Below, in pieces: positions 4,081 through 46,367 of a DNA stretch of 46,367 nt (position 1 is its first letter; each line of letters starts with the position of its first letter). Made by a program: the position numbers and the translations under genes. Source of the DNA: Andalucia godoyi And28 (Eukaryota > Protista > Jakobida); contig VRVR01000064.1 of the NCBI GenBank assembly GCA_009859145.1, positions 74,489 to 120,855 on the forward strand. Reading direction: 5' to 3'. The notes below the pieces were generated by a model, which saw nothing but the letters and a program-made list of their open reading frames with translations, had not been told where the DNA came from and made no database searches.

Positions 4081-4081
4081 G
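3945..4081 (+). repeat. 137-bp segment (phytochrome receiver 3' end) duplicated at 19375-19511
   Basis: Base-by-base comparison: CATTGCTATCACTGCAGATG...AAGTTGAGGCTGTAGG is identical in both copies except one substitution (GTACTC here, GTTCTC in the second copy). Confidence 0.95.
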
Positions 4082-4373
4082 GTGAATATTACGCAGCAGC
4101 AGATATTCGTAAACAGTGTACTTTCATTGATATAAGAGTGGTTCGTAAAGACTGCGGTTAAGGGACGTCGGTGAGTAACGTCCAGCACGAACGGACACTG
4201 ATTGTAGGGCAATCTCGGCTGCCGTAAGTAACCTGCAGCACTTTTTGCTCTGAAAAAAAGATGTGCAACATTTTGTTTGCTCGTTGTGTGATTTAAGAAC
4301 GTTCCAGACATTGCATTGCTAGGTTGACGTATCCCATTTGACTTTGGAATCTTCTGTATAGCATTTCACGTCC

Positions 4374-6592: not shown

Positions 6593-6877
6593 CCCCTGCT
6601 GTCTGTAACTTGAGCACGTACCGGCGTACCATTTTGAAGGAGATGTGGCAATTCCGGTCGGCGAGAACCAACGTTTGGTAGCGCGCTGCTATCGCCCTTG
6701 GTCAGTTGCAGACACAGGCTTTTTCAACGTCAGATTGGGCGATGGCAGGCAGCTCGTAAATAAAATGTTCAATCGTTCTCAAAAAAACAGAAAACTATCT
6801 CCGCTGACGTTTATTGGAAGCGCGCTTACTGATGCCCATTGTCAGTGAATAATGCTCGGCTTGCATGAAGTCCGGAC

Positions 6878-7676: not shown

Positions 7677-7770
7677 CGTTATTTAAATTAATTAAAATAC
7701 GTCAAGCGTAATTCATCACGTAAAAATAAAGGCAGAAATGGCGAATGAAACGCGCGCAAGTTTTGGGTGA

Positions 7771-7810
7771 GCACAACATCGCACAAACATCGCACAACAT
7801 CGCACAACAC
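7771..7810. repeat. Short tandem repeat, about 4 copies of GCACAACATC (one copy has an extra A, the last is imperfect)
   Basis: GCACAACATC GCACAAACATC GCACAACATC GCACAACAC, read directly in the intergenic DNA. Confidence 0.85.
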
Positions 7811-8026
7811 CCGCCAATTACGAACAATGCTTCCTGTGTGCATACAGCTGGAAAAAAAAGTGGCTTGTTATCCGAACTCTGCAAGACAAAATCACAACCC
7901 AGGAACGATCGTCTGCGCTAGGGTCGAGGAAAGGCAGGAATGAAGAAGCCCAGATAGGGCTGCATTCTTCGATGTGATTATGCACATGTGTTCGCTTTAC
8001 CATGGAATAACAAAAAAAAAACGGAC

Positions 8027-9382
8027 CTACCACATTTGGCAAACTCTAACATCTTGATCATCCAGCAAACGCACACGGGATGGCGAGCTTGCGCCATAAA
8101 TAGGCAATCGAGGCTCCAGAGGCTGAACGTCCTGCATCTCGACGGTCTCGGTGGACACCCCTTCGGAAAAGTCTTCCCCAGCGAGTCTGCGAATCGGAAG
8201 CATCGGGTTTGCTCCTCCAGTCTTCTTCCACCCTCCCGATTTCGGTTGATTGTTTGCAATACTTTGGTTCCCATTGCGATCGGAGACACTCGACTTGACA
8301 TCTACAATGGCACGAACAACTCGAATCTTCTTGTGGACATCAACGTAGACATCCGTCTCATCGACGATTTCTTCCGCAATAAGCTCTTCGAGCACGTCTT
8401 CAAGAGTCACGACACCAACCAAGTCATACGATTGAAAGACAAGCGCCATGTGCGAGCGACCCTGTTGGAACTTGTTCAGCAGCTGGTCAAGCGGCATGTG
8501 GGAAGGGACATGCAAAGGTTCCCGGAGAGGCAGCTGGCCGACAGTGATTCGCTTTGCAAGACCGTCATCTGAGAAGGCCAGTCCTGCAGATTTGATGAGC
8601 GTTTTCACAATCAATAACCCAATGACATTTTTCCTGTCACCCTTCTCATAAACTGGAATTCTTGAATGCGCCTTTTCGTACAATTCATCAAGGAAGGATG
8701 CATCAAAAACTCGATCAGCAGACGCCATGAATACAGAATCAAGCGGTGTCATGACCTGCAGCGCCGTCTTTTCGCGGAGTTCCAATGCACCGCGAATAAT
8801 AGAAACTTCATCACCTGTTAATTTGTGTTCTTCCCCATGCATGCGAACAAGTTCTTTGAATTCTGCTCTTCGAAAGAATCCTGCATGCGACTTTCCAAGA
8901 ATCAAATCAAGCAACTTGGAAATGGGCCAGGAAATAGGGAACGCAAGGGCCATGAGAAAACGGACGATAGGAGAGGCGTAAGCGCCAATGACAAGCCCGT
9001 ATCGCGAGCAAACACCTTGCGGAATGACCTCGCCAAAGAGGAGAACAGCAGTGACCGATATTATGATGGCAAGGTATGATGGGACAATCCTGTCGAGTGC
9101 AAGCGGAAGTCCTTCCATTGCAACCGCATTCCACAACAGCAAAGTCACAAGCAGCAAATGCTCCTTTTCCACGAGCGGCAAAATTCTACCTGCAAAATAT
9201 TTTTCTCTTTCCGACCCTACAGACACCAGAAGCCGCAAATTTAGCTTGTCAAGAGACAAGATACCGAGAGTCAGACCAGACATTAAGCCAGCGAAGCAAA
9301 CAAGGAACATGCACAGGAATAGCAATGCCAGAAAAGAACCGGAACCCGGCTCGGCAACGCTCTCTTCGCAGCTTTCGCTCAT
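8027..9382 (-). CDS. CNNM/CorC-family divalent metal transporter (DUF21 transmembrane domain + CBS pair)
   Basis: FAGLMSGLTLGILSLD, HLLLVTLLLWNAVAMEGLPLAL, LFGEVIPQGVC, GALELREKTALQVMTPL, HSRIPVY, FQQGRSHMALV and GVVTLEDVLEELIAEEIVDETD are all family-typical motifs. 451 aa, uninterrupted. Confidence 0.93.
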   Translation of the reverse strand: MSESCEESVAEPGSGSFLALLFLCMFLVCFAGLMSGLTLGILSLDKLNLRLLVSVGSEREKYFAGRILPLVEKEHLLLVTLLLWNAVAMEGLPLALDRIVPSYLAIIISVTAVLLFGEVIPQGVCSRYGLVIGAYASPIVRFLMALAFPISWPISKLLDLILGKSHAGFFRRAEFKELVRMHGEEHKLTGDEVSIIRGALELREKTALQVMTPLDSVFMASADRVFDASFLDELYEKAHSRIPVYEKGDRKNVIGLLIVKTLIKSAGLAFSDDGLAKRITVGQLPLREPLHVPSHMPLDQLLNKFQQGRSHMALVFQSYDLVGVVTLEDVLEELIAEEIVDETDVYVDVHKKIRVVRAIVDVKSSVSDRNGNQSIANNQPKSGGWKKTGGANPMLPIRRLAGEDFSEGVSTETVEMQDVQPLEPRLPIYGASSPSRVRLLDDQDVRVCQMW

Positions 9383-22360: not shown

Positions 22361-25300
22361 CTACTCGGCGGCAGGCGGAGGGTCTGCGGCAGCGACATCC
22401 TCAGCAATTCCCGAGTCTCTCTCCTGGAGTGGCGTACAATCAATGTTCGACTGTTCTTCACAATTCGAAGGGGCCGATTTTTCGTTCAAACCAGTGTCGG
22501 GCACCATTTCCGCCGCACTGATGTTGGTCTCTGGCTCGGAAATTCGCGACTCTTCACTGACGACGTTTTCTTTCTCTGGCGCCGCTTCCGTCTCCACGAT
22601 GACGGTAGAGACGTCAATGCTCGACGACATCTTGCATTCTGCAACATGCGATGATGATCCACACTCCGTGTCGTCTGTGCTCATGTCGAGCATGGGGATG
22701 GCGGGAGATAAAGGCAGAGCTGCAGACTTGCGCCGTTTCCAGAACCAGACTCTTCCGACAACTAGGGCGCCGAGAACTACCAGAGGTACCAAAACAATTG
22801 CAGCAATGTCTCCTGCAGATAGTGACCTCGATCCGCTTCCGTCAGACGATGGTGAAGAAGGGCTCCGGAGCGCATAAAAAACCGTCACAGTCGGCTGTGA
22901 TCCGGAGCTGCGGACAAAGTGTAGAGCAGGTGTAGGAGACAACGGCGTCGGATTGTACAGACCGACGTACACCGGCCCGCTCGCAAGGATCGACAGTGTT
23001 GCCGTTGTCGACTCGATGCGCTGCATGACTTCCCAGCTGGCCGAAGACGGCGAGGGGTTCGATGTCGACAGATATGCATCCACCGTGCCCCCGGTCACCG
23101 TGACAGTGATTTCGACGGTTCGTGCGCCGGCGGTTGCGAACGGTGGTGTGGACACGAACTTTGGCTGGCCGGGAGCAACAGCACCTACCAGCACCTCGGA
23201 ATTCTCGGCGACAACCTCTGTCTCTGACAGCGCAATCCAGGCACTGCCTGCCGCCGATCCACGCATGCACACGAAGCACTTTGCGTTTTGCACAAACCAC
23301 GCGCTTGCCGACGTGAGCGTTGTCACATTCAGCGCCAGGCTCAGCGACTCTCCTTTGGTGCTCGCAGTCGGCAGCGTTTCAAATGTGCTGACGTTGCACG
23401 AGGCAAACGATTCCACGGTCACTGCCTGGCGATTCCAGGTCGCATACACAGCGAGGGAGGCATTCGACGAGCTCAGCTGGTGCGATGCACACTGCCAATC
23501 TGCCGACAGCAGCGACAGTTCTGTGGGCAATAGTGCAGTCTCGGAAACATTGTAGACATTGCACCGGGGAGCTCTGTCCACGCTGGAGACTCCGCTGCTG
23601 CAGGTCGTGCAGTATGGTGATGCAGTTGGCGAGTACGTTCCTACTGGGCACGCATCGCAAGCCCCGCTTGCGTAGATGCCCGTGTAGGTTCCTGCAGGAC
23701 ACGGGCCGCATCCAGAGTTTCCGGATCCGGGAGCAAACCACCCCGGATAACACTGCACACAGCTTGCCGATCCGCTTGCGGGATACCATCCAGCAGCGCA
23801 GGGTGTGCAGACGCTGACGTTGTTCGCACCAACGACTGACGACGCCTGTCCAAAGGGACAGTAGTAGCAGGAAGGCTGGTCCGGCAGATTCTGCCAGGTG
23901 CCTGCTGCGCACTGTGCACAGGTCGTTGCGCTGACGCGGTACTGGCCGGGAGAGCATGTGCAAGCGCCGCAGGACGTCGATCCGACAGCGAGCGCGCACT
24001 GTCCGGTGCTGCAAGCTGTGCAGGTAGCGCTGCCCGCCGCCGACGAGAACGAGTTCACGGCACATGGAATGCACGATGTTGCATTCGTCGAGCCGTTGCT
24101 CGGATTGTAGGTACCTGCAGAGCACAGTGCGCACGACGTGGATCCCGCAGCGGTCGTGTAGCTTCCGGCAGAACAAGGTGCGCACACAGAGCTGGTTGCA
24201 GATCCAGTGGCGTTTCTCCATGTCCCGGCGGCACACAACGTGCATAAAGTTGAACCGTTGGCCGCTGCGAACGAGCCAGCAGGACATTGCAGGCACGATG
24301 CCGAGCTGATTCCGCCTGTGCGGTTGCTGTATGTCCCAGCAGCACAAAGCGTGCATGATGTCGAGCCATTCAATGCCGAAAACGAGCCAGCCGGACATGC
24401 AAGGCATGCAGATGCGCTCGACGTACCCCCAGTTGTGTTGCTGTATGTTCCGTACGGACATAAAACGCAAGCACTGGACCCGGCTGTTGAGTATGACCCA
24501 CTCGGGCAATCAAAGCACGAAGAAGCGCTCGTGGCACCAGTTGTGTTGCCAAACGATCCGGCGGCACATGCATGGCAAGATTCAACACTTGACGCACCCG
24601 TTACGTTCCCAAAAGAACCAGCAGGGCATGACTGGCATGAGCCGGATCCGCTCGCAGCGGAAAATGTTCCTACAGGGCACTGCGTGCATACTGAAGAATT
24701 GATTGCACCGGTGGCATTGCCAAATGTTCCCGCAGCACAGGGTGTGCATTGCGACAATCCAGCCGACGTTGCGTAACTACCTGCTGGACATGCAAAGCAA
24801 GCCGCAGAGCTGTTTGCAGCAGTGGTATTGCCAAACGTCCCCGCATCACAGAGTAAGCATTGTGATGATCCATTGGATGCAGTATAACTGCCTCCTGGAC
24901 ATGCGAAGCAAGACGATGAACTGTTTGCTGCAGTAGCATTGCCAAATGTGCCCGCAGCACAGGGTGTGCATTGCGACAATCCAGCCGACGTTGCATAACT
25001 ACCTGCTGGACATGCGAAGCAAGCCGATGAACTGTTTGCTGCAGTAGCATTGCCAAATGTGCCCGCAGCACAGGGTGTGCATTGCGACGATCCAGCTGAG
25101 GCTGCGTAACTACCTGCTGCACATGAGAAGCAAGACAAAGTGCTGTTACCCCCCGTCGTAGGGTTATATGTACCAGCAGGACACAATGTGCAATTAGGCG
25201 CTCCATAGGAAGCAGCGTATGTTCCTTCTGCGCACACATCGCAGCTTTGACCATTGAGGCCGGCAGCACCCGGAGAACATGCGATAGTCATCACTACTGC

Positions 25301-26371
25301 CCTCTGACCTAGTGCATTATCTACAAAAGCAACATACGGGACTCCAGAGCTGTCGAGCGCAAGGCTCGTGTCAACTGTTCCTGTACCTCCAGCAGAAAAT
25401 CTGGCTGATCCGACCGCCGTCCACACACTACCATTATACTTCATCACCGTTGTCTTGGAGCTTTCCCGAAAAGCAACATACGGGACTCCAAAGCTGTCAA
25501 ACACGAGATTCGTGCTATCTACGGCCCCGGCAGAAAATCCAGTCGATCCGACTGCCGTCCACACACTACCATTGTACATCATCACTGTTGCCTTGTTAGA
25601 ATTCGCTACATCCCGGAAAGCAATATACGGGACTCCAGAGCTATCAAGCGCAAGGCTTATGTCATATGCGGCTCCAGCAGAAATTCCGGCGGATCCGACT
25701 GCTGTCCACACTCCACTAGTGTACTTCATCACTGTTGCCTTGTAGGCATTTCCTGCATCTTGAAAAGCAACATATGGGACTCCAGAGCTATTGAGCGCAA
25801 GACTCGTGTAATCTGCAGTTCCAGCAGAAATTCCTGCGGAGCCGACAGTCGTCCACAATTCATTACTGTACTTCATCACTCTCGTTTTGCCTGAATTTGT
25901 TAAATCCCGAAAAGCAACGTACGGGACTCCAGAACTATCAAGCGCAAGACTGACGTACATAACGTCTCCAGCAGAAAATCCAGCCGACCCGACTGCCGTC
26001 CATACACTACCATTGTACTTCATTACTGTTGCCTTGTCAGAATTTCCTCCATCTTGAAAGGCAACGTACGGGACTCCAGAGCCATTGAGCGCAAGGCTAA
26101 TGAATCCAGCGGATCCAGCAGAAAAACCGGCCGATCCAACTGTCGTCCATATCCCACCGACGTATGCCCTCACTGTTGCCTTGAGTGAGTTCGCATTATC
26201 TCGGTAAGCAACATACGGGACTCCAGAACCATTGAGTACAAGATTTGTATCTGATACAACTGCACCTGAATTAATAACACCGTTTCCCACGCTTACCCAC
26301 GTATTGAACTGCTGCCCGTGAGTCAAACAAACTAACGTGCACAAGAGAACAACCCGCAGAACCAGTCTCAT
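22361..26371 (-). CDS. Type I membrane surface protein: signal peptide, 7 x about 49-aa beta-propeller-like repeats, long Cys-rich (GCC2_GCC3/ephrin-receptor-like) stalk, TM helix, acidic tail
   Basis: Signal MRLVLRVVLLCTLVCLTHG. Seven WTxVGSAGFSAG...SLALDSSGVPYVAF.D...KATVMKY repeats. Many CxxCPAGxY/F units. TM IAAIVLVPLVVLGALVVGRVWFW followed by KRRK. 1336 aa. Confidence 0.92.
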   Translation of the reverse strand: MRLVLRVVLLCTLVCLTHGQQFNTWVSVGNGVINSGAVVSDTNLVLNGSGVPYVAYRDNANSLKATVRAYVGGIWTTVGSAGFSAGSAGFISLALNGSGVPYVAFQDGGNSDKATVMKYNGSVWTAVGSAGFSAGDVMYVSLALDSSGVPYVAFRDLTNSGKTRVMKYSNELWTTVGSAGISAGTADYTSLALNSSGVPYVAFQDAGNAYKATVMKYTSGVWTAVGSAGISAGAAYDISLALDSSGVPYIAFRDVANSNKATVMMYNGSVWTAVGSTGFSAGAVDSTNLVFDSFGVPYVAFRESSKTTVMKYNGSVWTAVGSARFSAGGTGTVDTSLALDSSGVPYVAFVDNALGQRAVVMTIACSPGAAGLNGQSCDVCAEGTYAASYGAPNCTLCPAGTYNPTTGGNSTLSCFSCAAGSYAASAGSSQCTPCAAGTFGNATAANSSSACFACPAGSYATSAGLSQCTPCAAGTFGNATAANSSSSCFACPGGSYTASNGSSQCLLCDAGTFGNTTAANSSAACFACPAGSYATSAGLSQCTPCAAGTFGNATGAINSSVCTQCPVGTFSAASGSGSCQSCPAGSFGNVTGASSVESCHACAAGSFGNTTGATSASSCFDCPSGSYSTAGSSACVLCPYGTYSNTTGGTSSASACLACPAGSFSALNGSTSCTLCAAGTYSNRTGGISSASCLQCPAGSFAAANGSTLCTLCAAGTWRNATGSATSSVCAPCSAGSYTTAAGSTSCALCSAGTYNPSNGSTNATSCIPCAVNSFSSAAGSATCTACSTGQCALAVGSTSCGACTCSPGQYRVSATTCAQCAAGTWQNLPDQPSCYYCPFGQASSVVGANNVSVCTPCAAGWYPASGSASCVQCYPGWFAPGSGNSGCGPCPAGTYTGIYASGACDACPVGTYSPTASPYCTTCSSGVSSVDRAPRCNVYNVSETALLPTELSLLSADWQCASHQLSSSNASLAVYATWNRQAVTVESFASCNVSTFETLPTASTKGESLSLALNVTTLTSASAWFVQNAKCFVCMRGSAAGSAWIALSETEVVAENSEVLVGAVAPGQPKFVSTPPFATAGARTVEITVTVTGGTVDAYLSTSNPSPSSASWEVMQRIESTTATLSILASGPVYVGLYNPTPLSPTPALHFVRSSGSQPTVTVFYALRSPSSPSSDGSGSRSLSAGDIAAIVLVPLVVLGALVVGRVWFWKRRKSAALPLSPAIPMLDMSTDDTECGSSSHVAECKMSSSIDVSTVIVETEAAPEKENVVSEESRISEPETNISAAEMVPDTGLNEKSAPSNCEEQSNIDCTPLQERDSGIAEDVAAADPPPAAE
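23555..25277 (-). repeat. Intragenic Cys-rich tandem array (111-bp / 37-aa period), with near-identical units at about 24700-25130
   Basis: CGCAGCACAGGGTGTGCATTGCGAC recurs at 24731, 24953 and 25064 (offsets 222 and 111 bp). Protein unit CPAGSYATSAGLSQCTPCAAGTFGNATAANSSSACFA. Confidence 0.9.
25277..26299 (-). repeat. Seven tandem about 147-bp coding repeats (predicted 7-bladed beta-propeller)
   Basis: Repeat-initial Trp at codons 25, 75, 124, 173, 222, 271 and 317. ACGGGACTCCAGAGC-like DNA recurs once per unit. Confidence 0.9.
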
Positions 26372-27462: not shown

Positions 27463-28497
27463 CTATTGCGCCGGGAGTTCAGCGAACTGACGACCACGCA
27501 CAGCTGCACAGAACTCACGTATTCGAACTGTCATCGCATTGTCCGCACTGCACCGCTCTTCCAAATCAAAAAGCGTTAGCGCCGCGTCCCTCAGCTGCTG
27601 GAAAAACAAGCGAAGAGGCCCAAGGCCGTTCAAAACAGGCGTGTCAAGCGAGACATCCAGGAGATGAGCGATGATTTCTCTTCGAATCTTAAACAGGTCG
27701 TCCTTCGTTCGTACGCGGGTGTGTGAGTCCTGTTGCAGATTCTTCTTCTCATCAAGAACGATGGCCATTGGCGGCAGCCACGAGATCACGTCACCAAATG
27801 CAATGTACATTGTCGTCAGAATGACTTGTTGAAAGCAGATCTGTAATCGCTCGCCATCGGACAGATCGGCCAACGACGCCACTGCATCCAGCCAATCGGG
27901 CGAGAACGCAGAATGGTAGTGGAACTCGTCGTCTCTCTTTTGCATGAATGATGCACCGCCCCAGTTGATCAAGCATACAGGAAACATAAAATCATTGAGA
28001 GGTTCCGTCAGAAGCACGATGTTCTGCGGACAAATATCTATGTGGTGGATGCCATTCTCGTGGCAATTCGACACGATGGATGTCAGCTGAAGAAGGAGCT
28101 CGGTGCAGTAAAGCATCGCATGCTCAGAAAAGCACGATGCAAGTGGCAAAGGGTTGCCCACGGGAGTCGTGCAGAGAACACCACCGCGCTCGGACTGTCC
28201 AGAAACCACAAGGGACGGCACCCAGTACTTGTGAGCGTCCCAGTCGATTCTCGAAATTTCGAGCAGCACACTTCGCTCCGTTTCCATATCACCCAGCTTC
28301 GAAGGTGGAAAGCTCTTCACGACAACTGGCGTCGTTTGATCCACCACACCCGTCGCAACCTCGACTGCATCCGGCTCTCCCACTCCATGTACAGTGCACG
28401 CAAACCCTCCTGAGTCCAGTGCAACGGAACTGGTTTACAGCAGATCATAGTCCCAGCCGCTGCGAATCTGCAGAATGCGCAGATGCAGGAACACAGT
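27463..28497 (-). pseudogene. 5'-truncated, decayed kinase half of the coiled-coil/nuclease/kinase family (paralog of 36615-38597)
   Basis: HHIDICPQN...LINWGGASF...FSPDWLDAVASL closely matches HHMDICPQN...LIDWGGASF...FSPDWLDAVASL. Upstream in the same frame, VFLHLRILQIRSGWDYDLL*TSSVALDSGG matches VFICLRIFDSESGWNYELLETAPIALDDGG, with TAA at 28437-28435 and an internal deletion of roughly 45 codons. The DFG-position Asp is replaced by Asn. The track start (28383) is a GTG. Confidence 0.85.
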
Positions 28498-28720: not shown

Positions 28721-31700
28721 TCACAGTCGGTCGTTTTGTATCTGTCCAGCGTACGCACTATTGGTTGTTGGAGACCAGACTGCAGTGCCCCGGCTTGCGG
28801 GTCTCGTAACAGGAGGAGCTCCAACGTTTGCCGGAGCCGAGGGCGAAAACGGTGATGCAGGACTTTGCAGAGGGAACATCGGTTGCGGTGTAGGCTCCTG
28901 GCTGTGTGGCCCTTTCGTTGCCGCAGCCGTTCGCCTCTTTCGAATGAAGTACACGGCTGCTCCGACACCGGCAGAAACGACTACGATGCATGCAATGACG
29001 ACGCCGGCAATCAAACCTGCGGAACCCGATGCTTCCGAACCATTGCCACTCGATGGATTCGACGGAGTTGGCGGAGGAGCCACAGTACTGGTATAGGAAA
29101 GCACTCTCCATGAAAACGTTCCGTCGCACTCTATGTAAGAACCTTGCATATAGAGCGTTGCAATGCTGGAAGACGCACTTAACAACGTCGACGACGGCGA
29201 CGAAGTGGTAGAAGAAGAACCGGACGTGGAAAACGACGGCAGGATACCATTTCCCGAAACAAAAGGACCTGAAAGATCGAAAAGACTGCAGTTTGCAATA
29301 AGAGTGAACGTCGTGGTCGAAGCCGAACAGCCATCCGAGACAGTTAGCTGCACCACATACGTGCCCGCAGCACGCACGGTGAGCCATGTTGACTTTTCCT
29401 GGGTTTCTGAAAGCAGAGGGGCAAACGAGGAAGCATCGGAAACTGCAGGACTTGTGGAAAACGACAGGGACTGTGACACCGTCCACGAGAAGCCCAAGGG
29501 ATCGGAATCAGCATCCGACGACGATGTTCCATTCAGGAACAGCGAAAAGATGCCAGTGTCGTTGAGCATCACCATCGAGGAGTCCGCAAGCGTAGATACG
29601 ATGCGTGCAGCTGGAGGGCTGTTGCAAACGGCAGTCAACGTAACAGTGGCAGTCTTCGTGCACGATGAATCCGACATTGAAAGCTGCACAACGTAACTAC
29701 CAGGAACGTCCAGAGGGATAAAGGGGATGTTGAATAGACCGCGGGTTGCTGTGGATACAGGTCCTAGCCGAACTGTCGTGGTGACTGCGGTCGTCGTGCT
29801 TGTCGTCGTTGTATTGTAAAATACGGTTCGTTCTGTATCCGTTTCCTGCGTGACATTTTGCGCTTGCACCACGGAAGAGTTCACAACAACAGTCTGTACT
29901 TGGCAGAGTACACTCTGCTGCGGCGCGCTGATCACCTCCCACAAAAATGTGTAGTTTGCGAAATTCCGTCCCGCATCCAGTGTAGAGAGATCCGCGCTCA
30001 GCGAAGTTTCAAATCCAAAAGACTGGCCGCTGTTCCAGACCACGGTCTTCGCCGTTCCACCAACATTTGGAACGAAGCTGCCGCATCCCAGCACCACTGA
30101 GACAGCATCGAGATCGTCGTCATGAGTGTCTTCCACCACCTCGACCACAATACTGTCCCTCTCCGTTGCTGCGGTGCACCCATCCGTAACCGTCAACTGA
30201 AGTTCATACACTCCCGGAGAAGTGATAGTTAAGCTCGTGGCAATGCCTTGCGCAAACAAGAATTCTTCGCGCCTGCCAGATGACATCCTGGAAAGCTCCC
30301 AAGAGTACGTCCAAAGGTTTTCATCTTCGCATTTCATGTCTGCATCACAGCGCGTCTGCTCTGCGGACAAAAAAATCGTCCCAACACCTCTGTGCCTGTC
30401 CAGTACAAGATGCTTGGAAGAGCCCAGTGTTGACAGAGTGAGCTGACCTGCTGCAAAGCGACAATCAGCGTGGATCGAATATCCGGTATTTCCGCCCATT
30501 TCACAAATGTTCTTACTCCCCACACGCACGTGATACGTTCCAGACTGCAGCGGAGTAGCCGAGATGAACGGAGCGTTGTGCAGTGATTCGAAAGACACAA
30601 AAGACGAAAGTCTTTCAGCATTACATAGTTGCATATCAGTCATGCCACCGACGGGAAGGAGGACCGCAGAAAACTTGCGTAGTGCAGCATTCCAGTTGCT
30701 CTTCAAAGCGACCGCGGAATCGTCCGCATCAATTTTTCCAAACTGTTTCGTTGTCTGAGGCATCGTCCGAGTCTGGACTGGCAGACTTTCATCGGCTAAT
30801 GATCGCAGACTGACAGACGATGTCAGCAGTTTTGTTATACCCCACCTTGCTGCCGAGCAGCCATTGCTCAGTACAAGATTTACACTCACTCTTCCTCCGT
30901 TTCCTGGCGCTGCAAAAGTGATTGCCGGCGATGTAGAATTGCTGGAGATGATCGTTCCGCCGTTCGCTGGTTCATATTGGAGTGTCCAAAGATAGGAAAG
31001 CTGTCGTCCATAAGGTTCCACGCTGCGACTAGCGTTCCACGTGATAGGATCGATGACGCCTGTGATGGGGTTGAACGGATTGGCGACTCCAAGAGTATCG
31101 AAAACTTTGATCAATGGCGCTGGTCCACAGGCCACCGTGGCGGTACCAGTCGCGGATGCAGAAGAGCATGCCGACTCCAGATGGTATCCAATCGTGTAGG
31201 TACCAACACATTTCGAGGGACTGCTCGGATCCGCCGGGATCACAGATACCGTCGTGGTCGATGGCTGAACATCGGGAATAGGACGAATCGCAGATGTTGA
31301 AAGAGCAGCATTGTTGGAAGGGGATGGAGGTGATAATGTAATGTTGCACAAATTGTTTGCAGGGATAGCTTTCAGTTGTCGGACCGACGTCAGTGTCGTG
31401 GAAATTGTCGTCGTGTACACAGCAAGAGGGACTCTCCAAGCGGGGACCATTCCTCCCCACGAAGACATGGATACTTGAGATGCGGAAAGAGTGGTGTTCG
31501 AAACAACAATTGTTTTTGGCAGATTGACGACCACCGGGTCCGAAAGGTTGCGACTGGCGGTTCCTGGCACGAAAACAGAGTAGGATTTTGATTGAGAAGT
31601 CGTGTTTGCAAGCACAAACACAGCAGAAGGATAATCTTGAATGCTTGCTTCTTGCAGGACAAAGCTTTCACTGTACGGAACACCTCGCTGCGGTCCCAAG

Positions 31701-33907
31701 CCGAGCGCAATCAGAGGTCGAACTAGTACGGACCGGAATGCACCCACCGAAGATGTTTTGTTCCAGACGGCGTCCTTGTCCATGGTCACCGCGGGATTCA
31801 GCGCAGCGGACGATGTGCAGTCCGGACACTGTGCGCTGACGTTCCACCTCAGTTTTTGCAAATTGCAACCGTCATACACTGCAACTTCGAACGAAAATGA
31901 GCCTGGTCGCGTCGCCTGCCACATCACAGACTGCCCCGACTCAGCCGTTAGAAATGGCGCATCAGAACCTTGAATCATCTTCCAGGAGAAGTACAGGGAG
32001 CGTCCAGAAACACCGCCAATCACGGGAATCGTCAACTTCACCACAGGGTACCCATACAATGGATCCGGAACGACAGTCTGCGGAGCGACGATCGTGCTCA
32101 CAGTTAGCCCCACCGAGCATGCAATCACGACTGAAGTGTTTGCCGTCCGGCCAGAGCAGGGAGAGCTCACGGACCCCGCGATCATGTAAGTGCCGCCCAA
32201 CGTCTTTTTGGAGGAAACCAGCAGAGAACCATTGGGCTGCTGGACGAAGTTCAGGGGAGGTACGACGGCACCACCATACGTCGCATGAAAATCAACTGGC
32301 TGCGAAATACCAGTGCCAAGAAGCTCCAGATCACACTGGTACTGACATGTAGTAGTGTTCACAATCGGAATGCTGGGAAGACCTTCTTTGCACAGCGCGT
32401 TGCAAGCAACGATGAGCAAGTCCGAGGATGACGTCGCATATTCGATATTTCCAGTTGTGACGACGTCAAACAAGCATGACTGGAAAAGAAACGAAGTAGA
32501 ACTAACTCCTGGAAGAGCATTCGAACAGGCAATGTACGATGCGTCTGTGGAGGCAGGAGCTGTAAAGGCCGGGTCGCCCGGGCCTGATACTGCGCTTACG
32601 GGTGCTGCAACCGGCGAAGCATAGCCGAGGAACGACGGAAAAAATGAATCCAGCGACGACGACACCGCAGAAGCGCTCACGAACGCAGCCACGTCTGCTG
32701 GCACACGTGAAGTCGCGTTACTGGGGATAATTCCGGAAATGGTCGAAAAGATGGAAAAGTCGTCATCCGGGCAGCCGTCATAGAATCCACAGAGACCATA
32801 GAGAGATCCGTACAGAATCGGATGCGGCCGCAGAATCGCCGACGACGAGAAAACCGAAAACCGAATTTCTGCGCGATGTAGCAATGGACCGTAATCCACG
32901 ACGACGATCACCGTGGATGGTGCTTCTCGTTTGATGCTTACAGTAGTGTTGGAAACCGAGGACGTCCACAAACTTCCGGACAAAAGCGGTTTCAGCTGAG
33001 CAGCAACCCCGTTGTGAAAGAGCAGAACGGAAGAACTATCGGTCTCATAAAACACAGAGATTGTTTCCGCTGAGGTACGCATGGCAAACCCACGAGCACA
33101 CGTCTGAGATGACGCAGCAAAGCAAGGGAGATGGCGAACCTGCACGTTCCATGAGAACTTGGGGTCTGTAGCTGCTGAGCGAATGGCCCAGTAATCTCCC
33201 GTGGACTGAGTAGAAAACGAGGAACCATCAAAAGTCACATAATGTGGATCACCAAAAATGGTGCACGCGTTTCCCACTGCTTGTCGGATGCTGGTCGTCA
33301 GGCGCACAATGGAGACCAGCAACAACTGAAATGTCTGCGCCACAAAGTTGTGGCTGTTTGGTGGAGACGAGCCGAGCGAAGAAAGCTCACTTTGAGAGAT
33401 GGAGGTGCCCACTCCGAGGGTGAATATTTCAATGCCGCTCGCTTTCGCTGCATCTGCTGCCGCAACTGGGCTATCGTCGGCGACACCATCCGTTATGAGA
33501 ACCAGCGCACGACGACGATTCATGGTCTGCACACTGAGCATCGTCTGCGCGGCATTCAGGCACGAAATCATGTTTGTGCTTCCTCCACTGTATACCATTG
33601 TCTGTAATGTATTCACAACGACGGATTCGGACACATTCAGCGGTTGCACGACTGTCGAAGAACTTCCAAATGAGATGGCACCAACCCGAATATTGCCGCT
33701 GAGAGCCGCTGGACGCAGCAAAGTTTGCGATAATTGAATAACAAATGGACGGACGCTGTCCTCGAACACGGGAGCGGTGATGGATCCCGACACATCAATA
33801 CAGAGAGCGATATCGATCTGCGCAGCGATGCCGCATCCCTGAGAATGCACAGTATGCAAGCTACAGCACAGGACAACTAGCGAAAACAGAAAAAAGAATC
33901 GATGCAT
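28721..33907 (-). CDS. Large type I membrane adhesin: signal peptide, VWA (MIDAS), VWD, several Ig/PKD(REJ)-like domains, TM helix, Pro-rich tail
   Basis: VWA: DIALCIDVSGSI, RVGAISF, GGSTNM, LVLITDG, IFTLGVG. VWD: CTIFGDPHYVTFDG, GLCGFYDGCPDDDF. Repeated FSWxV...GxYxVQLTVSDGC strands. TM GLIAGVVIACIVVVSAGVGAAVYFI followed by RKRR. 1728 aa, no introns. Confidence 0.92.
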   Translation of the reverse strand: MHRFFFLFSLVVLCCSLHTVHSQGCGIAAQIDIALCIDVSGSITAPVFEDSVRPFVIQLSQTLLRPAALSGNIRVGAISFGSSSTVVQPLNVSESVVVNTLQTMVYSGGSTNMISCLNAAQTMLSVQTMNRRRALVLITDGVADDSPVAAADAAKASGIEIFTLGVGTSISQSELSSLGSSPPNSHNFVAQTFQLLLVSIVRLTTSIRQAVGNACTIFGDPHYVTFDGSSFSTQSTGDYWAIRSAATDPKFSWNVQVRHLPCFAASSQTCARGFAMRTSAETISVFYETDSSSVLLFHNGVAAQLKPLLSGSLWTSSVSNTTVSIKREAPSTVIVVVDYGPLLHRAEIRFSVFSSSAILRPHPILYGSLYGLCGFYDGCPDDDFSIFSTISGIIPSNATSRVPADVAAFVSASAVSSSLDSFFPSFLGYASPVAAPVSAVSGPGDPAFTAPASTDASYIACSNALPGVSSTSFLFQSCLFDVVTTGNIEYATSSSDLLIVACNALCKEGLPSIPIVNTTTCQYQCDLELLGTGISQPVDFHATYGGAVVPPLNFVQQPNGSLLVSSKKTLGGTYMIAGSVSSPCSGRTANTSVVIACSVGLTVSTIVAPQTVVPDPLYGYPVVKLTIPVIGGVSGRSLYFSWKMIQGSDAPFLTAESGQSVMWQATRPGSFSFEVAVYDGCNLQKLRWNVSAQCPDCTSSAALNPAVTMDKDAVWNKTSSVGAFRSVLVRPLIALGLGPQRGVPYSESFVLQEASIQDYPSAVFVLANTTSQSKSYSVFVPGTASRNLSDPVVVNLPKTIVVSNTTLSASQVSMSSWGGMVPAWRVPLAVYTTTISTTLTSVRQLKAIPANNLCNITLSPPSPSNNAALSTSAIRPIPDVQPSTTTVSVIPADPSSPSKCVGTYTIGYHLESACSSASATGTATVACGPAPLIKVFDTLGVANPFNPITGVIDPITWNASRSVEPYGRQLSYLWTLQYEPANGGTIISSNSTSPAITFAAPGNGGRVSVNLVLSNGCSAARWGITKLLTSSVSLRSLADESLPVQTRTMPQTTKQFGKIDADDSAVALKSNWNAALRKFSAVLLPVGGMTDMQLCNAERLSSFVSFESLHNAPFISATPLQSGTYHVRVGSKNICEMGGNTGYSIHADCRFAAGQLTLSTLGSSKHLVLDRHRGVGTIFLSAEQTRCDADMKCEDENLWTYSWELSRMSSGRREEFLFAQGIATSLTITSPGVYELQLTVTDGCTAATERDSIVVEVVEDTHDDDLDAVSVVLGCGSFVPNVGGTAKTVVWNSGQSFGFETSLSADLSTLDAGRNFANYTFLWEVISAPQQSVLCQVQTVVVNSSVVQAQNVTQETDTERTVFYNTTTTSTTTAVTTTVRLGPVSTATRGLFNIPFIPLDVPGSYVVQLSMSDSSCTKTATVTLTAVCNSPPAARIVSTLADSSMVMLNDTGIFSLFLNGTSSSDADSDPLGFSWTVSQSLSFSTSPAVSDASSFAPLLSETQEKSTWLTVRAAGTYVVQLTVSDGCSASTTTFTLIANCSLFDLSGPFVSGNGILPSFSTSGSSSTTSSPSSTLLSASSSIATLYMQGSYIECDGTFSWRVLSYTSTVAPPPTPSNPSSGNGSEASGSAGLIAGVVIACIVVVSAGVGAAVYFIRKRRTAAATKGPHSQEPTPQPMFPLQSPASPFSPSAPANVGAPPVTRPASRGTAVWSPTTNSAYAGQIQNDRL

Positions 33908-36614: not shown

Positions 36615-38597
36615 TCATCCAAGAGAAGAGCAGAACTCTAGCACGTGTCTAACCAGCCGTTCACTCGCGCTGCTCTCGTTCTTCATCTCAAACAAACTGG
36701 GGAACTCACGGTGCAGCCGTTGCAAAAAGGAACGCAGTGGTCGCCGCTCCTCCGTGTCCAGCGCAGGAATCGGTAGGTATGGATTCAGCACATCGTTCAG
36801 AATACGCGACCGGATTCGAAACAGTTCATTTTTGTTGTGCAGCCGGGTATGCGATTCTAGAGTTGATTCGTTCAAATAGATGGCCACCGGCGGCAGCCAC
36901 GAGAGGACGTCTCCAATTGCCAGGTACACCGTCGTGAGCACAGCCTGCTGCAGACACACATGGAACCGTTGTCCATCGGACAGATCAACCAACGACGCCA
37001 CTGCATCCAGCCAATCGGGTGAGAAGGCAGCATGGTAGTGAAACTCTTTTTTGTCACGCTTCTGGATAAACGACGCACCGCCCCAGTCAATCAAACAAAT
37101 TGGAAACTGAAAGTCGCTTTGGACGTTCTCCAGCAACACCACATTCTGCGGACAAATGTCCATGTGATGTATGCCATTCTGGCTGCACTGCAGTACAATG
37201 CTGATCAACTGCTGCAAAAGTTCCGTGCAAAAAGCGAGGGCACGGTTCGGGTAACACGATGCAAGTGGCAATGGCACTCCTACTGGAGCTGTGCACAGAA
37301 TTGCTCCATGATCGGACTGTTCAGAATGCAAGAGATTCGGCACCCAGAATCGATGGTGGCCCCAGTCGATTCGAGAAAGCTCCTGCAGTGCACCCAGTTC
37401 GGTCGTCCACTCCGCTTGCTTCGATACCGGAAAACACTTGACAACGACGGATGTTGTTGAATCAAGAGTCGCGGTCGCTAGTTCCACAACATCCATCTTC
37501 CCGATGCCATGGACCGGTGCACGCTGCAGCATTCCAGTCAATTCCAGCCTCGGTGAAATGGATAGTGAGTGCACGATTCCAGAGGACAAGGTGGACACAA
37601 CTGGTGGTGGCGCGCCATTCCACCCACACAGGGCATGCGGATCACTGGACAACAAGTAGCAAATGCCTTTCATTCCACCGTCATCGAGGGCAATGGGTGC
37701 AGTTTCCAGCAGCTCGTAGTTCCATCCAGATTCAGAATCGAAAATGCGCAAACAAATAAAAACGATGAAATTCCGGTTGCACGCAAAGCCCCAACACACA
37801 CGGCGAAAAATTCCGGATTCCTGAACAATGTGCGCAAATCGCTGGTACACTTGCTGTATGGCCTCGGAGAGCTTTGACTTTGATGTGCCGTCGAATCGAT
37901 CGGATCCTTTGAGTTCCCCGGCAATGCTTGCTCCCGAGTACATGGAACGCCGAAGGGCAAGACGGCCTATGCAAAGCAGAAGGTCCACCCTTTGGTTCTG
38001 TCCGTAAAGGCCACTCCGCGAAAAATCCACTAGGTGCATGTCGCCGTGCTTGGAGAGGAATCGAGTGATGAACAACCGGAATTGGACTTGCAGGAGCGGC
38101 TCAGGACAAGAGTCCAAAGGAAGCGTTCCCACCGTCTCGTTCCACATTGCCTGGAAATCCTCCCAGAACGGGAGATTGGAAGAAATGGATGGGAAAAGAT
38201 CGTCAAACGAAGCACCGGTGGCATACAAATTGGTGGTGCCGCTGCGCGACGACGACCCCAAAGCCAGCAAATCCTGCGACAACTTGGAGAGAAAATACTT
38301 GATATCGGATACTCGCTCTGCTTCTTGTGACCTCTTTGCTTCTTCTTCGGACTTGGTCGCTCGTTCTAGGGACTTTTTCGCCATTTCTTCGGCAGCAAGT
38401 CTTCTTTGATGCTCTGCCTCTTTCTCCTGTCTTTCTCTCTCTTTCTCAAGGCGTTCACGTTCAAAGGCTGCTTCAGCAATTTCCTTCGCCTTCCGTTCAC
38501 GTTCAGCGACTGCTTCAGCAGCCTCCTTTGCCTGCTTCAACTGCTCGAATTGCTTCAGCAGCTCCTGAATCTTGTCATTTGGATCAGACAAACTCAT
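36615..38597 (-). CDS. Coiled-coil + PD-(D/E)xK (REase-fold) nuclease-like + protein kinase; Crinkler/RHS-effector-like or FunK1-like architecture; intact copy
   Basis: Charged coiled coil over about the first 95 aa. Helix PEPLLQVQF, then RVDLLL...IAGELKG (D and ExK). Kinase motifs VVVK, TE (alphaC), HHMDICPQN and LIDWG. 660 aa. Confidence 0.85.
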   Translation of the reverse strand: MSLSDPNDKIQELLKQFEQLKQAKEAAEAVAERERKAKEIAEAAFERERLEKERERQEKEAEHQRRLAAEEMAKKSLERATKSEEEAKRSQEAERVSDIKYFLSKLSQDLLALGSSSRSGTTNLYATGASFDDLFPSISSNLPFWEDFQAMWNETVGTLPLDSCPEPLLQVQFRLFITRFLSKHGDMHLVDFSRSGLYGQNQRVDLLLCIGRLALRRSMYSGASIAGELKGSDRFDGTSKSKLSEAIQQVYQRFAHIVQESGIFRRVCWGFACNRNFIVFICLRIFDSESGWNYELLETAPIALDDGGMKGICYLLSSDPHALCGWNGAPPPVVSTLSSGIVHSLSISPRLELTGMLQRAPVHGIGKMDVVELATATLDSTTSVVVKCFPVSKQAEWTTELGALQELSRIDWGHHRFWVPNLLHSEQSDHGAILCTAPVGVPLPLASCYPNRALAFCTELLQQLISIVLQCSQNGIHHMDICPQNVVLLENVQSDFQFPICLIDWGGASFIQKRDKKEFHYHAAFSPDWLDAVASLVDLSDGQRFHVCLQQAVLTTVYLAIGDVLSWLPPVAIYLNESTLESHTRLHNKNELFRIRSRILNDVLNPYLPIPALDTEERRPLRSFLQRLHREFPSLFEMKNESSASERLVRHVLEFCSSLG

Positions 38598-43150: not shown

Positions 43151-45583
43151 TCACGATTGACCGTTTGCTGGAGCAAAAGTCAGGATTTCTAAATCCTCCA
43201 AGTGTATATCGATAATTTCACGCTGCATCATCGTCATCAATCGATAGACGCACGGTAGCAACCAACCGGTCACTGGCGACCAGAACACAACTTCATTGAC
43301 TGCACGACCACTGTGTTCGCCGAAACATGCAGAAATCGCAGCGACTTTGACATCAAGAGGTAATTCCCGAGAATGTTGAAGAGCGTGCCGAATGTAAGTG
43401 ATCAATCGAGGGACGATCATGTTGGCGAATCGGTTTTCCGTCTGCAAGCCGATCCGGAAATGTGGCGCCAACTCCAAAGGGAGACACGTTTCTACCGTCA
43501 GAATTCCGCTGGCCCATGCAACAGGCCGCTGAACAAACAGAGCGAGGAGTCTTGAATCGTCCAAGAAAGCAGGAATATCCTGTGTACCCAGCGCAATCTT
43601 GTCATAGAGTCTCATAAAAAATCCCTCCAATCCATCATGTGACAAGAAAAATGGATGCGTCAGCAGATCTGTAATTTTGGGTCTTGCCTGTTCGTCGTGT
43701 AATAACATCCATTCCAAAAGGTAAAAGAGCATCGGAGCGCGCGTGCGCAGACAGCTTTCCAAGTACTGAGGGGTCTGTCTTTTCAGAATGAAATCTGATT
43801 GATGACCAGCAGCTTCTCTCGATCCATTTCCGAAAGGCAAGTTTCCATCCAAGAAGACATACGACATTGTCATGCCAAGCATGAATACGTCCTGGAAAAA
43901 TGAACAAGGGACGATACCACCACTTAACCTCGGGCTTCTTGTGTCGTCGTTTCCTTGCACGACCCCTCCGTCGGAAACTGCTGAATGAAAGCGTCGAAGC
44001 ACGGAAACTACTTCGAAAGGCTGAAACTCTCCCGCGAGTCCGTTCGTGGGCACTGGACTGTTAATGTTCGCACCAATGTTGATACGATCTACGGTCGGCA
44101 TGTTTCGTATGCGAGAGGGAAGCACGGCGGAAGCTGCAAGGCAGTGGCTTATCCCAAAATCTGCCAGTTTGATCTTGCCAGTGCGGGAGATAAGGACATT
44201 GCAAGGTCGAATATCCCTATGAACCCAAAGATGGCTGTGCATCTGCTTGATTGCATTGCAGAGAGTCTGGAATACATACATCTTCTCACTGTTTGGCATC
44301 GGGATTGGAGATTCTAGGAGAAGTGCTGATTCAAGACGATCATCCAGAGATCCAATACAAAACTCTTGTACAATGAAACAATCCGCATCGTAAGGAACAA
44401 TTGCGAACACATCGGCGAAATGATCTGGAGATAACTCATGCAGCCTTTTCTGGATCTCAACTTCGACGCTTAGGATTTCCGCATCTCGCATGCCCACCAT
44501 TCTTTTCATCGCAACCGGTTGGAGAATCACTGATCCGAACGAATCAACCTTCATGACTCCGCGAAATACCATCGTTCCCCCTGATCCGCGTCCCAACTCG
44601 CATCTGAAGTCTACCCAAAATCTGTCATCTATTTGTCGCATTCTTGTCGTATCATTCCAGCCTTGACCGAGAAGACGGTCATTACGGCGACTGATGAAAT
44701 CACGATGAATACTGGAAATGGAATATCTTGAATGTTCCCCCGTATCTGGACGGACAGATGGTTCTACGGAGTGCCGCATAGTAAGAGTTCCCTCTTCAGT
44801 TCGAGCAGCGGCAGGAGGGCTGATCGGTGCCGGAGTGTTGGAAGACAATACATGTGGATTGTTATTGATACGGATGTCATCAAGGTCTTGAACAAGACGT
44901 TCAAGATCAATTCTATGTGCAACATCTTGCGAGACAGTAAATCCACGATCTTCCAATGCATGTCGGAAAGCAGGATGCGTCGAATATCTCAAGTTCATTG
45001 GAAGTGCTTCGGGATGATGTAGTCGAATCCAATCCGAAAGTGCAGCACCTAGCGTGGGACCAAATAGACTCCGAACTCCTCTAAGACGCTCATTGAGAAA
45101 TTTTGCAAACTGTGATGCGATGTGACGAACAAATTCGTCGCGAAGCCTTCTGGCGACTGCGCGGGCCACAGGTAAGAGCAATCTTTCAGTTTGAACGGTA
45201 ACATCCCAGAAGACACCGTCAATCATGCGTGAGCGAAATGCCAACAATATCGCAATCCCTTGTTCAAAAAGCTCCGTAGACAAGAACGTAACACGCGCAG
45301 ATGTTTGGGCAACACTATTGGTACGCAACACCTGTACTTCGGTTCTATGTCCGATGCTCCCGAGACGATTCTTCAACTGCTGCTCCGAATTCTCGGATGA
45401 GATGCCCGCTTGCTCGGATGGCACATTTTCAACTAGCAGAGTACATTCTTGAAGGGAACGAACCGTGTCGACTAGCAATGGATCGTTGCGAAAGAAGTCG
45501 TACACAAACCCTTGCTCGCTCTGCACAAGAAGTGCATTTACGCTTTCCAATAACAAGTGGAGTTCCGCTGATTCGCCGTTCAT
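43151..45583 (-). CDS. IRE1/RNase L-like Ser/Thr kinase + KEN ribonuclease with an N-terminal RRM-like domain; no signal peptide or TM segment
   Basis: The track start 45634 is TTG; the first ATG is 45583. Kinase: LGRGSGGTMVFRG, VAMK, HRDIRPCNVLI, LADFGIS, DVFMLG...GNLPFG, RPKITDLLTHPFF, all IRE1-like. KEN-like: LEGFFMRLYDKI...W...RLITYIRHALQHSRELP...LLPCVY. RRM-like: TLLVENVP...EQQLKNRLGSIG..EVQVLR...ARVTF...GIAIL...WDVTV. Confidence 0.88.
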   Translation of the reverse strand: MNGESAELHLLLESVNALLVQSEQGFVYDFFRNDPLLVDTVRSLQECTLLVENVPSEQAGISSENSEQQLKNRLGSIGHRTEVQVLRTNSVAQTSARVTFLSTELFEQGIAILLAFRSRMIDGVFWDVTVQTERLLLPVARAVARRLRDEFVRHIASQFAKFLNERLRGVRSLFGPTLGAALSDWIRLHHPEALPMNLRYSTHPAFRHALEDRGFTVSQDVAHRIDLERLVQDLDDIRINNNPHVLSSNTPAPISPPAAARTEEGTLTMRHSVEPSVRPDTGEHSRYSISSIHRDFISRRNDRLLGQGWNDTTRMRQIDDRFWVDFRCELGRGSGGTMVFRGVMKVDSFGSVILQPVAMKRMVGMRDAEILSVEVEIQKRLHELSPDHFADVFAIVPYDADCFIVQEFCIGSLDDRLESALLLESPIPMPNSEKMYVFQTLCNAIKQMHSHLWVHRDIRPCNVLISRTGKIKLADFGISHCLAASAVLPSRIRNMPTVDRINIGANINSPVPTNGLAGEFQPFEVVSVLRRFHSAVSDGGVVQGNDDTRSPRLSGGIVPCSFFQDVFMLGMTMSYVFLDGNLPFGNGSREAAGHQSDFILKRQTPQYLESCLRTRAPMLFYLLEWMLLHDEQARPKITDLLTHPFFLSHDGLEGFFMRLYDKIALGTQDIPAFLDDSRLLALFVQRPVAWASGILTVETCLPLELAPHFRIGLQTENRFANMIVPRLITYIRHALQHSRELPLDVKVAAISACFGEHSGRAVNEVVFWSPVTGWLLPCVYRLMTMMQREIIDIHLEDLEILTFAPANGQS

Positions 45584-45687
45584 TTGGAATGGAGTTGTTG
45601 CACAAAAAAATAAACAAAAGACGACGAGTGACAATCAGGTGGCCGTTTTAGAACTCCCCAACACACCTGAGACCAGCAACCGAGGAG

Positions 45688-45850
45688 TGTTACGACCCAA
45701 GTCGATTTTAGGCGAACTCGAGTTCGCATGGCAGGCGAACACGAGTTCGCATAGCTCCTTAGGCGAACACGAGTTCGCATGGCTGGACGACCGAAGTCGA
45801 TTTTCATGCGAACTCGTGTTCGCCTGATTCCTGCCTATGCGAACTCGTGC
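45688..45850. repeat. Array of a near-palindromic 20-bp unit AGGCGAAC(T/A)CGAGTTCGCAT (3 forward, 1 inverted, 1 partial inverted) plus an 18-bp direct repeat
   Basis: 16-bp cores at 45712-45727 (perfect palindrome GCGAACTCGAGTTCGC), 45735-45750, 45763-45778, inverted at 45808-45823, partial at 45839-45850. ACGACC(C/G)AAGTCGATTTT at 45692-45709 and 45787-45804. Confidence 0.93.
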
Positions 45851-46056: not shown

Positions 46057-46367
46057 TCACCCATTCGCGCACGAGTCGCCTTCGTGGCACAGCGCGGTGC
46101 ACCGACGGTTGTTCTTGATGCATGGACAGTGTGGGTTGGAGCATTTCTTTTTCGCTCTCCTACAGTTACAGAAGCGCGGTCCATCGTTTGACAATATCGG
46201 CTCGACACCCGTTGAATGCTTCATCCCAGCTTCGGAGACGGATATCGTTTCCACTGTCTCTTGGCTTTGGTATTTTTGGAACATGGCTCGGAGTTGCGTA
46301 TCTTGGTTTGTTGTTCCTTTGGGAGCAAGTGCCACGAGAGCAGAAGACTTCATCGCAGGCTCAACTA
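46057..46367 (-). CDS. C-terminal fragment ending in a CXC/tesmin-like Cys cluster; frame open to the right edge of the window
   Basis: CNCRRAKKKCSNPHCPCIKNNRRCTALCHEGDSCANG*. Upstream of the track ATG the frame continues (..VEPA) to the window end, so the gene is 5'-incomplete. Confidence 0.7.
   Translation of the reverse strand, partial: VEPAMKSSALVALAPKGTTNQDTQLRAMFQKYQSQETVETISVSEAGMKHSTGVEPILSNDGPRFCNCRRAKKKCSNPHCPCIKNNRRCTALCHEGDSCANG

Follow-up and report, generated by a model that had tools for sequence, protein, structure and literature searches.

The gene considered here lies on the minus strand of a 46,367-nucleotide stretch of the genome of Andalucia godoyi And28 (contig VRVR01000064.1, positions 74,489 to 120,855; this whole stretch is referred to below as the window), where it runs from position 45583 down to 43151 and encodes a protein of 810 residues. 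The protein is probably a soluble dual enzyme of the IRE1 family and belongs to a small, divergent protist clade that has so far gone unannotated. It comprises a competent-looking protein kinase followed by a domain of the KEN/HEPN type, and is headed by some 320 residues that appear to be specific to the lineage. Its location is most likely cytosolic. The original prediction for this gene, made from the DNA letters without database searches, was of an apparently cytosolic kinase-ribonuclease whose sensor resembles an RNA-recognition motif (RRM), and it is partly supported by the analysis described here. The features of the gene are collected in Table 1.

The kinase–KEN core and its relatives

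The family to which the protein belongs was assembled from an exhaustive HMMER search against 1.84 billion representatives, in which only three proteins, the query counted, fell below an expectation value (E) of 1e-30. The best match other than the protein itself, P0004, is a protein of 707 residues with 33% identity, and its homology to the Andalucia open reading frame (ORF) is contiguous across residues 157–788. A profile of the C-terminal domain run over the match list adds P0006, P0074/P0153, P0096, P0123, P0030, P0092, P0055, P0070 and P0021, and more distant members are P0034, P0016, P0041, P0115 and P0028. The relatives derive from metagenomes, Logan assemblies, EukProt (P0123) and one cDNA, and none of them has been functionally named. 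The cDNA, P0006, is GenBank BAK02759.1, which originates from a barley library and is labelled ‘predicted protein’; a contaminant organism is suspected behind the barley label. Identity to the relatives is only 19–33%, and the N-termini cannot be aligned, except for residues 157–270 with P0004. The members have in common an HRD-[ILV]-R kinase, the motifs QP-x-EV and DVFMLG, a C-terminal R-x4-H and a W-[LIVF]-[LV]-P signature. Apart from the query, word-indexed searches with the full protein, with its C-terminal 170 residues and with the family alignment brought up nothing but generic kinases.

The kinase domain has a complete set of catalytic motifs. The claim of an IRE1-type kinase with an intact GRGSGG loop, VAMK, HRD..N and DFG is borne out by the Pfam match to Pkinase, and direct translation finds every one of these motifs, together with the RHALQH of the C-terminal domain, where they had been placed. 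AlphaFold, when supplied with the family alignment, models the kinase at a predicted local distance difference test score (pLDDT) of around 90. In a ten-sequence alignment of the family the columns G331, G333, A358, K360, H455, R456, D457, R459, N462, D475, F476 and G477 are invariant, and the glutamate of helix alpha-C, Glu374, is almost invariant among 23 aligned sequences. On sequence grounds the signature is that of an active, or at minimum nucleotide-binding, kinase. The catalytic loop of every family member follows the pattern HRD-[ILV]-R-x-x-N, with an arginine where Ser/Thr kinases carry lysine. In P0006 the loop reads HRDIRAAN, resembling that of the Src-type tyrosine kinases, in which an arginine is also found at this position. 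Thr513, within the long activation segment, is a putative phospho-acceptor.

The relationship of the C-terminal domain to KEN emerges from comparisons of profiles. When the family profile is searched against all PDB sequences the 13 best matches are IRE1 (E 2e-35, 125.7 bits), and the alignment runs as one piece from the N-lobe of the kinase through to the KEN domain, laying ‘lvkwlRhaltH’ on ‘LLRAMRNKKHH’. The next-best PDB kinases (TTK, 117 bits) align to the end of the kinase only. A comparison of the family with canonical KEN by hhalign, with the last kinase helix included, gives a probability of 96.3%. If every kinase residue is removed and four canonical sequences only are used, the comparison gives a P-value of 0.0016, and against 12 canonical and divergent KEN domains it gives a probability of 84% (P 7.5e-6) over 76 columns, which take in the conserved Trp and the helix bearing R-x4-H. 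The KEN homology of the C-terminal domain, and with it the proposed KEN-like domain with an R-H-x3-H motif, is confirmed at the level of profiles only.

Within this domain R732, H737, W774 and P777 do not vary among 14 diverse sequences, and the residue after the R732 position alternates: seven of the sequences, the query among them, have His and the remaining seven have Asn. Phe719 sits 13 residues before R732, where canonical KEN domains align a conserved Tyr in the profile alignments. This Tyr we take to be a catalytic residue of IRE1, whose catalytic set presumably consists of Tyr, Arg, Asn and His; of these the query keeps only Arg732 and His737. A survey of HEPN proteins describes the residue following the conserved Arg as ‘mostly N, D or H’ and records that the Arg and His of the motif are essential by mutagenesis in KEN and other HEPN RNases (PMC3710099). 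His733 is therefore acceptable at its position, as had been argued for a second HEPN residue, and RHALQH agrees with the HEPN definition of an R-x4-6-H motif in which the Arg is followed by a polar N, D or H and which relatives conserve (PMC3710099).

A number of results weigh against the reading of this domain as a KEN RNase, the Phe719 substitution among them. The Pfam model for KEN, Ribonuc_2-5A (PF06479), gives no match at E<=10 to either the whole protein or its C-terminal 189 residues, and it also misses 13 other family members that were scanned whole (E<=0.01); the true IRE1-like proteins of the same match list are recognised by it. When the KEN-only part of the family profile is searched against the PDB it yields RNase L alone, at E 1.1. 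AlphaFold with the family alignment predicts seven to eight helices over residues 649–803 (pLDDT 48–85), and in a Foldseek search of the whole model against the PDB the 50 matches listed are plain kinases, so that at the level of structure the KEN fold and the IRE1-like arrangement of kinase and KEN are putative. The canonical Asn is replaced by His733, and a His that is near-invariant in the family at position 769 is a Ser. Given the deviations at Phe719, His733 and Ser769, the RNase may be weak or inactive in this member of the family.

An alternative built upon these deviations holds that the C-terminal domain is derived from KEN and that its nuclease has been lost in this protein, which would then be a signalling kinase whose KEN-like part serves for dimerisation or for binding RNA or protein. 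The divergence of the domain beyond the reach of Pfam and the moderate confidence of its C-terminal model also speak for this alternative, but R732 and H737, the pair found essential by mutagenesis (PMC3710099), are invariant family-wide, the query included, and His is a normal choice for the residue behind the Arg in HEPN motifs, made by some of the relatives too. Moreover, Phe719 is not a loss specific to the query, because the Tyr position is variable throughout the family. Loss of the nuclease is considered unlikely.

If the protein is a working dual enzyme, its mode of action can be drawn by analogy with IRE1 and RNase L. The N-terminal region would control self-association in response to some cue, after which nucleotide would bind to the kinase domains and the long activation segment would be autophosphorylated in trans. 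Dimers formed back to back would then pair two KEN domains, in which R732, H733 and H737 may form a metal-independent RNase site, leaving products with 2',3'-cyclic phosphate ends.

The N-terminal region and the question of an RRM

In the region that precedes the kinase, a phmmer search with residues 1–140 gives a self-match only, with no homologue even inside the family, and residues 157–270 can be aligned to P0004 alone (E 3.6e-4 for the piece of residues 136–240 on its own). The original prediction read a beta-alpha-beta-beta-alpha-beta pattern at 45440–45190, corresponding broadly to residues 47–131, as RRM-like. From this it reasoned that the protein would bind RNA directly and be driven to oligomerise, thereby activating the RNase, which would make it an antiviral or RNA-surveillance nuclease.

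This proposal is considered improbable. Residues 47–131 have no Pfam match, RRM_1 included, at E<=10 and no phmmer match in the PDB, and profiles made from the segment and from look-alike segments of relatives reach RRM proteins in the PDB only at E 0.5–1.4. With a small self-made profile of RRM sequences the segment scores -2.8 bits, a value equalled by 61 of 300 shuffles. The RNP1 (beta3) and RNP2 (beta1) motifs of an RRM bear exposed aromatic residues; when the segment is read by eye LLVENV resembles RNP2, but in QTSARVTF, the candidate beta3, the positions that are aromatic in RNP1 are taken by Ser and Arg. Structure prediction is no more consistent. A single-sequence AlphaFold model places a helix at 63–75, strands at 81–87 and 94–100, a helix at 103–117 and a strand at 124–130, an alpha-beta-beta-alpha-beta order that would suit an RRM, but with a pLDDT below 50 for these elements and a mean of 36, which is too low for use. 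The strands are absent from 47–131 in the alignment-based model, where the pLDDT is below 55. The two models disagree at low pLDDT, and no sequence method detects an RRM at the proposed place. Furthermore, the segment is missing from P0004, the closest relative.

What speaks for an RRM comes largely from other members of the family. P0041, a distant member, carries a recognisable RRM ahead of its kinase–KEN unit (E 1.9e-4 to the cS22 RRM in the PDB, and a score with our own RRM profile that is reached by none of 300 shuffles), with a Pfam RRM_1 match that is sub-threshold at E 0.018. Residues 47–131 have a weak local similarity to this RRM (z 3.6, 5 of 500 shuffles) and to P0006 (z 3.3), and both similarities, for segments that were picked by eye, fall on the would-be beta2-beta3-alpha2. 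P0030 has a sub-threshold match to OST-HTH/LOTUS (E 2.4e-4, 21.3 bits against a cut-off of 23.8). From P0041 and P0030 it follows that RNA-binding heads occur in the wider family, but for the Andalucia protein an RRM in residues 47–131 is unsupported, and therefore so is RNA binding mediated by it.

A scan of viral contigs contains no relatives, a scan of metagenomes gives only generic and mostly short matches to the kinase core, and PADLOC and NCBIfam likewise return matches to the kinase core only. As neither viral relatives nor any defence signal other than the kinase core came to light, an antiviral or surveillance role is speculative.

A broader proposal leaves the Andalucia N-terminus as an orphan and looks to the family as a whole, which might be a Pfam-invisible clade of soluble proteins of microbial eukaryotes where interchangeable nucleic-acid-binding heads took the place of the lumenal sensor, with an RRM in P0041, LOTUS-like winged helices in members of the P0030 type and an orphan head here. 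Its members would be cytosolic nucleases that sense or target RNA, a protist counterpart of RNase L with an origin independent of OAS and 2-5A (2',5'-oligoadenylate). This is a tentative idea, and one that is considered unlikely.

Relation to IRE1, RNase L and other kinase–KEN proteins

The reading of the protein as a soluble enzyme is carried by the absence of anything resembling a membrane anchor. By the Kyte–Doolittle mean over a 19-residue window, with a threshold of 1.6, no segment of the 810 residues reaches the strength of a transmembrane (TM) helix, the maximum of 1.48 lying within the C-terminal domain, and no hydrophobic N-terminus follows the first ATG. The absence of a signal peptide or TM helix, as proposed for the product starting at 45583, is thereby corroborated. 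Canonical IRE1s from the same search (P0053, P0134, P0109 and P0144) reach 2.2–3.0 just before the kinase. The hydrophobicity maxima of the relatives lie in helices of the kinase core, with the exception of P0096, which has a borderline value of 1.93 near its N-terminus. At E<=1 neither a lumenal or PQQ-type domain nor ankyrin repeats are detected by Pfam, which does give weak PQQ/beta-propeller matches to canonical IRE1s of the same match list. Because signal peptide, TM helix, lumenal domain and ankyrin repeats are all lacking, the protein is neither a canonical IRE1 of the unfolded protein response nor an RNase L, and here the original prediction stands.

An ordinary IRE1 of the endoplasmic reticulum (ER) membrane, for which unrecognised upstream exons would encode a signal peptide, a lumenal sensor and a TM helix, is very improbable: as a eukaryote the host may have introns, only 784 bp of the window lie beyond the ATG on its upstream side and the 17 in-frame codons that precede the ATG are hydrophobic (LSLVVFCLFFCATTPFQ), but the upstream ORF on the same strand, with a CXC-like C-terminus, ends at 46057 and the remaining 470 bp or so are filled with palindromic repeats of non-coding codon usage, which makes a hidden exon for sensor and TM helix very unlikely, whilst the 320 residues before the kinase hold no TM helix, the relatives are complete ORFs without TM or lumenal domain, on transcript-sized contigs or in one cDNA, and Pfam finds no PQQ or lumenal match.

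The soluble enzyme shares with IRE1/ERN1 (PDB 3FBV, 2RIO, 4PL3, 4YZ9) a KEN domain placed directly after the kinase, intact kinase motifs, a junction helix of the form HPFF...FF..L.D.I and the register of R-x4-H on RNKKHH, and IRE1 is its best PDB match. It lacks the signal peptide, the lumenal sensor and the TM helix of IRE1, and PF06479 does not recognise it. At the positions that we take to be catalytic it has His for Asn and Phe for Tyr. It further differs in reading HRDIRPxN where IRE1 has HRDLKPxN, in the long insert of its activation segment and in its orphan N-terminus of 320 residues.

RNase L (PDB 4O1O) provides the second comparison. It too is soluble, with an N-terminal ligand-binding module ahead of a kinase fold and then KEN, and its KEN region is matched weakly by the KEN-only family profile (E 1.1). 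By analogy, ligand-driven dimerisation that switches on the nuclease is likely to be common to both. Unlike RNase L, the query has no ankyrin repeats, which in RNase L bind 2-5A, and comes from a non-vertebrate, and a 2-5A system is not implied. Moreover, its kinase keeps the full set of catalytic residues; the kinase fold of RNase L, by contrast, is classed as a pseudokinase.

Soluble fusions of kinase and KEN with CCCH, ankyrin, UBI and BRCT domains have been catalogued (PMC3710099), and the match list of the present search includes a CARD-kinase-KEN protein (P0152) and a kinase-KEN-CCCH protein (P0109). As in the Andalucia protein, a kinase–KEN core is combined in the catalogued fusions with a lineage-specific accessory domain and is reused outside the unfolded protein response; unlike the query clade, they have a canonical KEN above the Pfam threshold. 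The class of architecture is therefore not new, with soluble kinase–KEN proteins bearing added domains catalogued (PMC3710099) and a CARD-kinase-KEN protein seen. The claim that the architecture had not been described must accordingly be narrowed: what is new is only the divergent clade missed by the curated KEN model, together with its unassigned or RNA-binding-type N-termini. No description of an RRM- or LOTUS-kinase-KEN architecture, or of this clade, was found in the searchable literature.

The kinase–KEN switch is well understood in two settings only, in IRE1 for ER stress and in RNase L for vertebrate antiviral defence. If the present reading is true, the soluble divergent clade would be a third natural setting of this ligand-gated RNase module and a route to other triggers. 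Since the Pfam KEN model fails on members of the clade, surveys based on PF06479, such as PMC10400998, would miss it, and the distribution of kinase–KEN proteins among protists is probably underestimated. The practical value of this single gene is modest for the present.

Two side observations concern other proteins of the search. In P0029 and P0043 a canonical-type KEN profile matches at two to three separate places in each polypeptide, with R-N-x-x-Q-H motifs, which looks like tandem duplication of a kinase–KEN unit. The contig that carries P0153, L001, has at 3333–7322 a gene for a protein of 1329 residues with LRR, protein kinase and weak IBR matches, about 2.7 kb upstream of the P0153 gene; its architecture is innate-immunity-like. 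Most of the other genes on L001 have no Pfam match.

Reading frame, upstream palindromes and genomic setting

The minus-strand frame is open from 45634 to the stop codon, and its first ATG in the ORF list is at 45583. Codon usage was assessed by a log-likelihood ratio (LLR), for which eight further long ORFs from the window served as the training set. In frame 0 the LLR per codon is +0.13 for residues 1–46 and +0.10 for residues 47–131, similar to the neighbouring genes; the LLR is above zero in frame 0 throughout the ORF, and the other frames and the intergenic DNA on either side score below zero. Since the codon usage of frame 0 is positive from residue 1, the N-terminal part of the ORF is coding, and translation can reasonably be taken to start from the ATG at 45583. 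A start at Met119, which would drop the RRM-like segment and give a length like that of P0004, is disfavoured, codon usage being clearly coding from residue 1.

Table 1. Features of the kinase–KEN gene and its upstream region (positions in the window; residues numbered from the ATG at 45583)
Feature	Position	Strand	Basis and remarks
Whole coding sequence, 810 residues plus stop	43151..45583	-	ORF list, homology, codon usage; stop codon at 43151-43153; an intron is not required
In-frame TGA, 17 codons upstream of the ATG	45635..45637	-	Sequence and translation; restricts how far this exon could extend the N-terminus
Residues 1-46, predicted helical leader	45446..45583	-	AlphaFold secondary structure; low pLDDT
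Residues 47-131, segment previously read as RRM-like	45191..45445	-	RRM signal not found (Pfam, PDB, profiles)
Residues 136-240, predicted helical	44864..45178	-	Homology, AlphaFold; shared from residue 157 with P0004 only
Residues 241-319, Pro/Ser/Thr-rich linker, then short helix before kinase	44627..44863	-	pLDDT lowest here, 30-43 over residues 241-290
Protein kinase domain, residues 320-648, complete catalytic motif set	43640..44626	-	Pfam Pkinase E 2.2e-19; pLDDT about 90
Glycine-rich loop GRGSGG, residues 331-336	44576..44593	-	Direct translation
VAMK with ATP-anchoring Lys360	44504..44515	-	Translation, family alignment
Catalytic loop HRDIRPCN, residues 455-462	44198..44221	-	Translation, family alignment; Arg459 in place of the usual Lys of HRDLKxxN
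DFG, residues 475-477	44153..44161	-	Direct translation
Long activation segment, DFG (475-477) to QPFEV (521-525)	44009..44161	-	Translation, family alignment; includes near-invariant Thr513
KEN-like (HEPN-type) C-terminal domain, residues 649-795, predicted all-helical	43199..43639	-	hhalign, family profile against PDB, AlphaFold
R732-H-A-L-Q-H737, R-x4-H putative RNase active-site motif	43373..43390	-	Translation, alignments; aligned with IRE1 RNKKHH
Four to five copies of 16-nt palindrome GCGAAC-WCGW-GTTCGC, 125-270 nt upstream of the ATG	45708..45849		Candidate promoter element

The palindrome upstream of the gene is present as four copies of the exact pattern and a half copy (45692–45849), where shuffles expect none, and is found nowhere else in the window. 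The copies are flanked by an 18-nt direct repeat (ACGACC[CG]AAGTCGATTTT). The cluster suggests a dedicated transcriptional input of the kinase–KEN gene; it may represent grouped binding sites for a transcription factor, or else a small repeat element.

The window has a GC content of about 48% and the neighbouring genes are all uninterrupted ORFs; the host is an intron-poor eukaryote. The neighbours encode a phytochrome, an amino-acid permease, a CNNM/CBS protein, a single-chain eukaryotic topoisomerase II, an ephrin-receptor-like repeat protein and a VWA/VWD/PKD giant protein. No second KEN-like ORF is present in any frame of the window. Weak and sub-threshold protein-kinase matches are found in the minus-strand ORFs at 36615–38597 and 27463–28383 (Pfam E 2.4e-4 and 6.8e-4, respectively), neither of which is a paralogue of the kinase–KEN gene, the ORF at 36615–38597 being unrelated to it by BLASTP.

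The genes of the window are divided by a divergent strand switch at 6056–8027, with two long plus-strand ORFs at the left (362–6056) and long minus-strand ORFs, supported by domains, at the right (8027 to the end). The first plus-strand ORF (362–3919) is an uninterrupted phytochrome-type frame of 1185 residues with GAF, PHY, HisKA and HATPase_c domains and about 340 C-terminal residues without assignment; taken with the other genes, it points to a host that is photosynthetic or photosensing. The ORF upstream of the kinase–KEN gene (46057–46353, minus strand) runs past the end of the window, so that only the 3' end of the gene is included; its last 40 residues are Cys-rich, with a weak resemblance to tesmin/TSO1-type CXC (Pfam E 0.12). 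Finally, the minus-strand ORFs at 22361–26371 and 28721–33907 encode very large repeat proteins of secreted type, the one with 13 ephrin-receptor-like repeats and NCD3G-like Cys modules and the other with a VWA-VWD-PKD arrangement.

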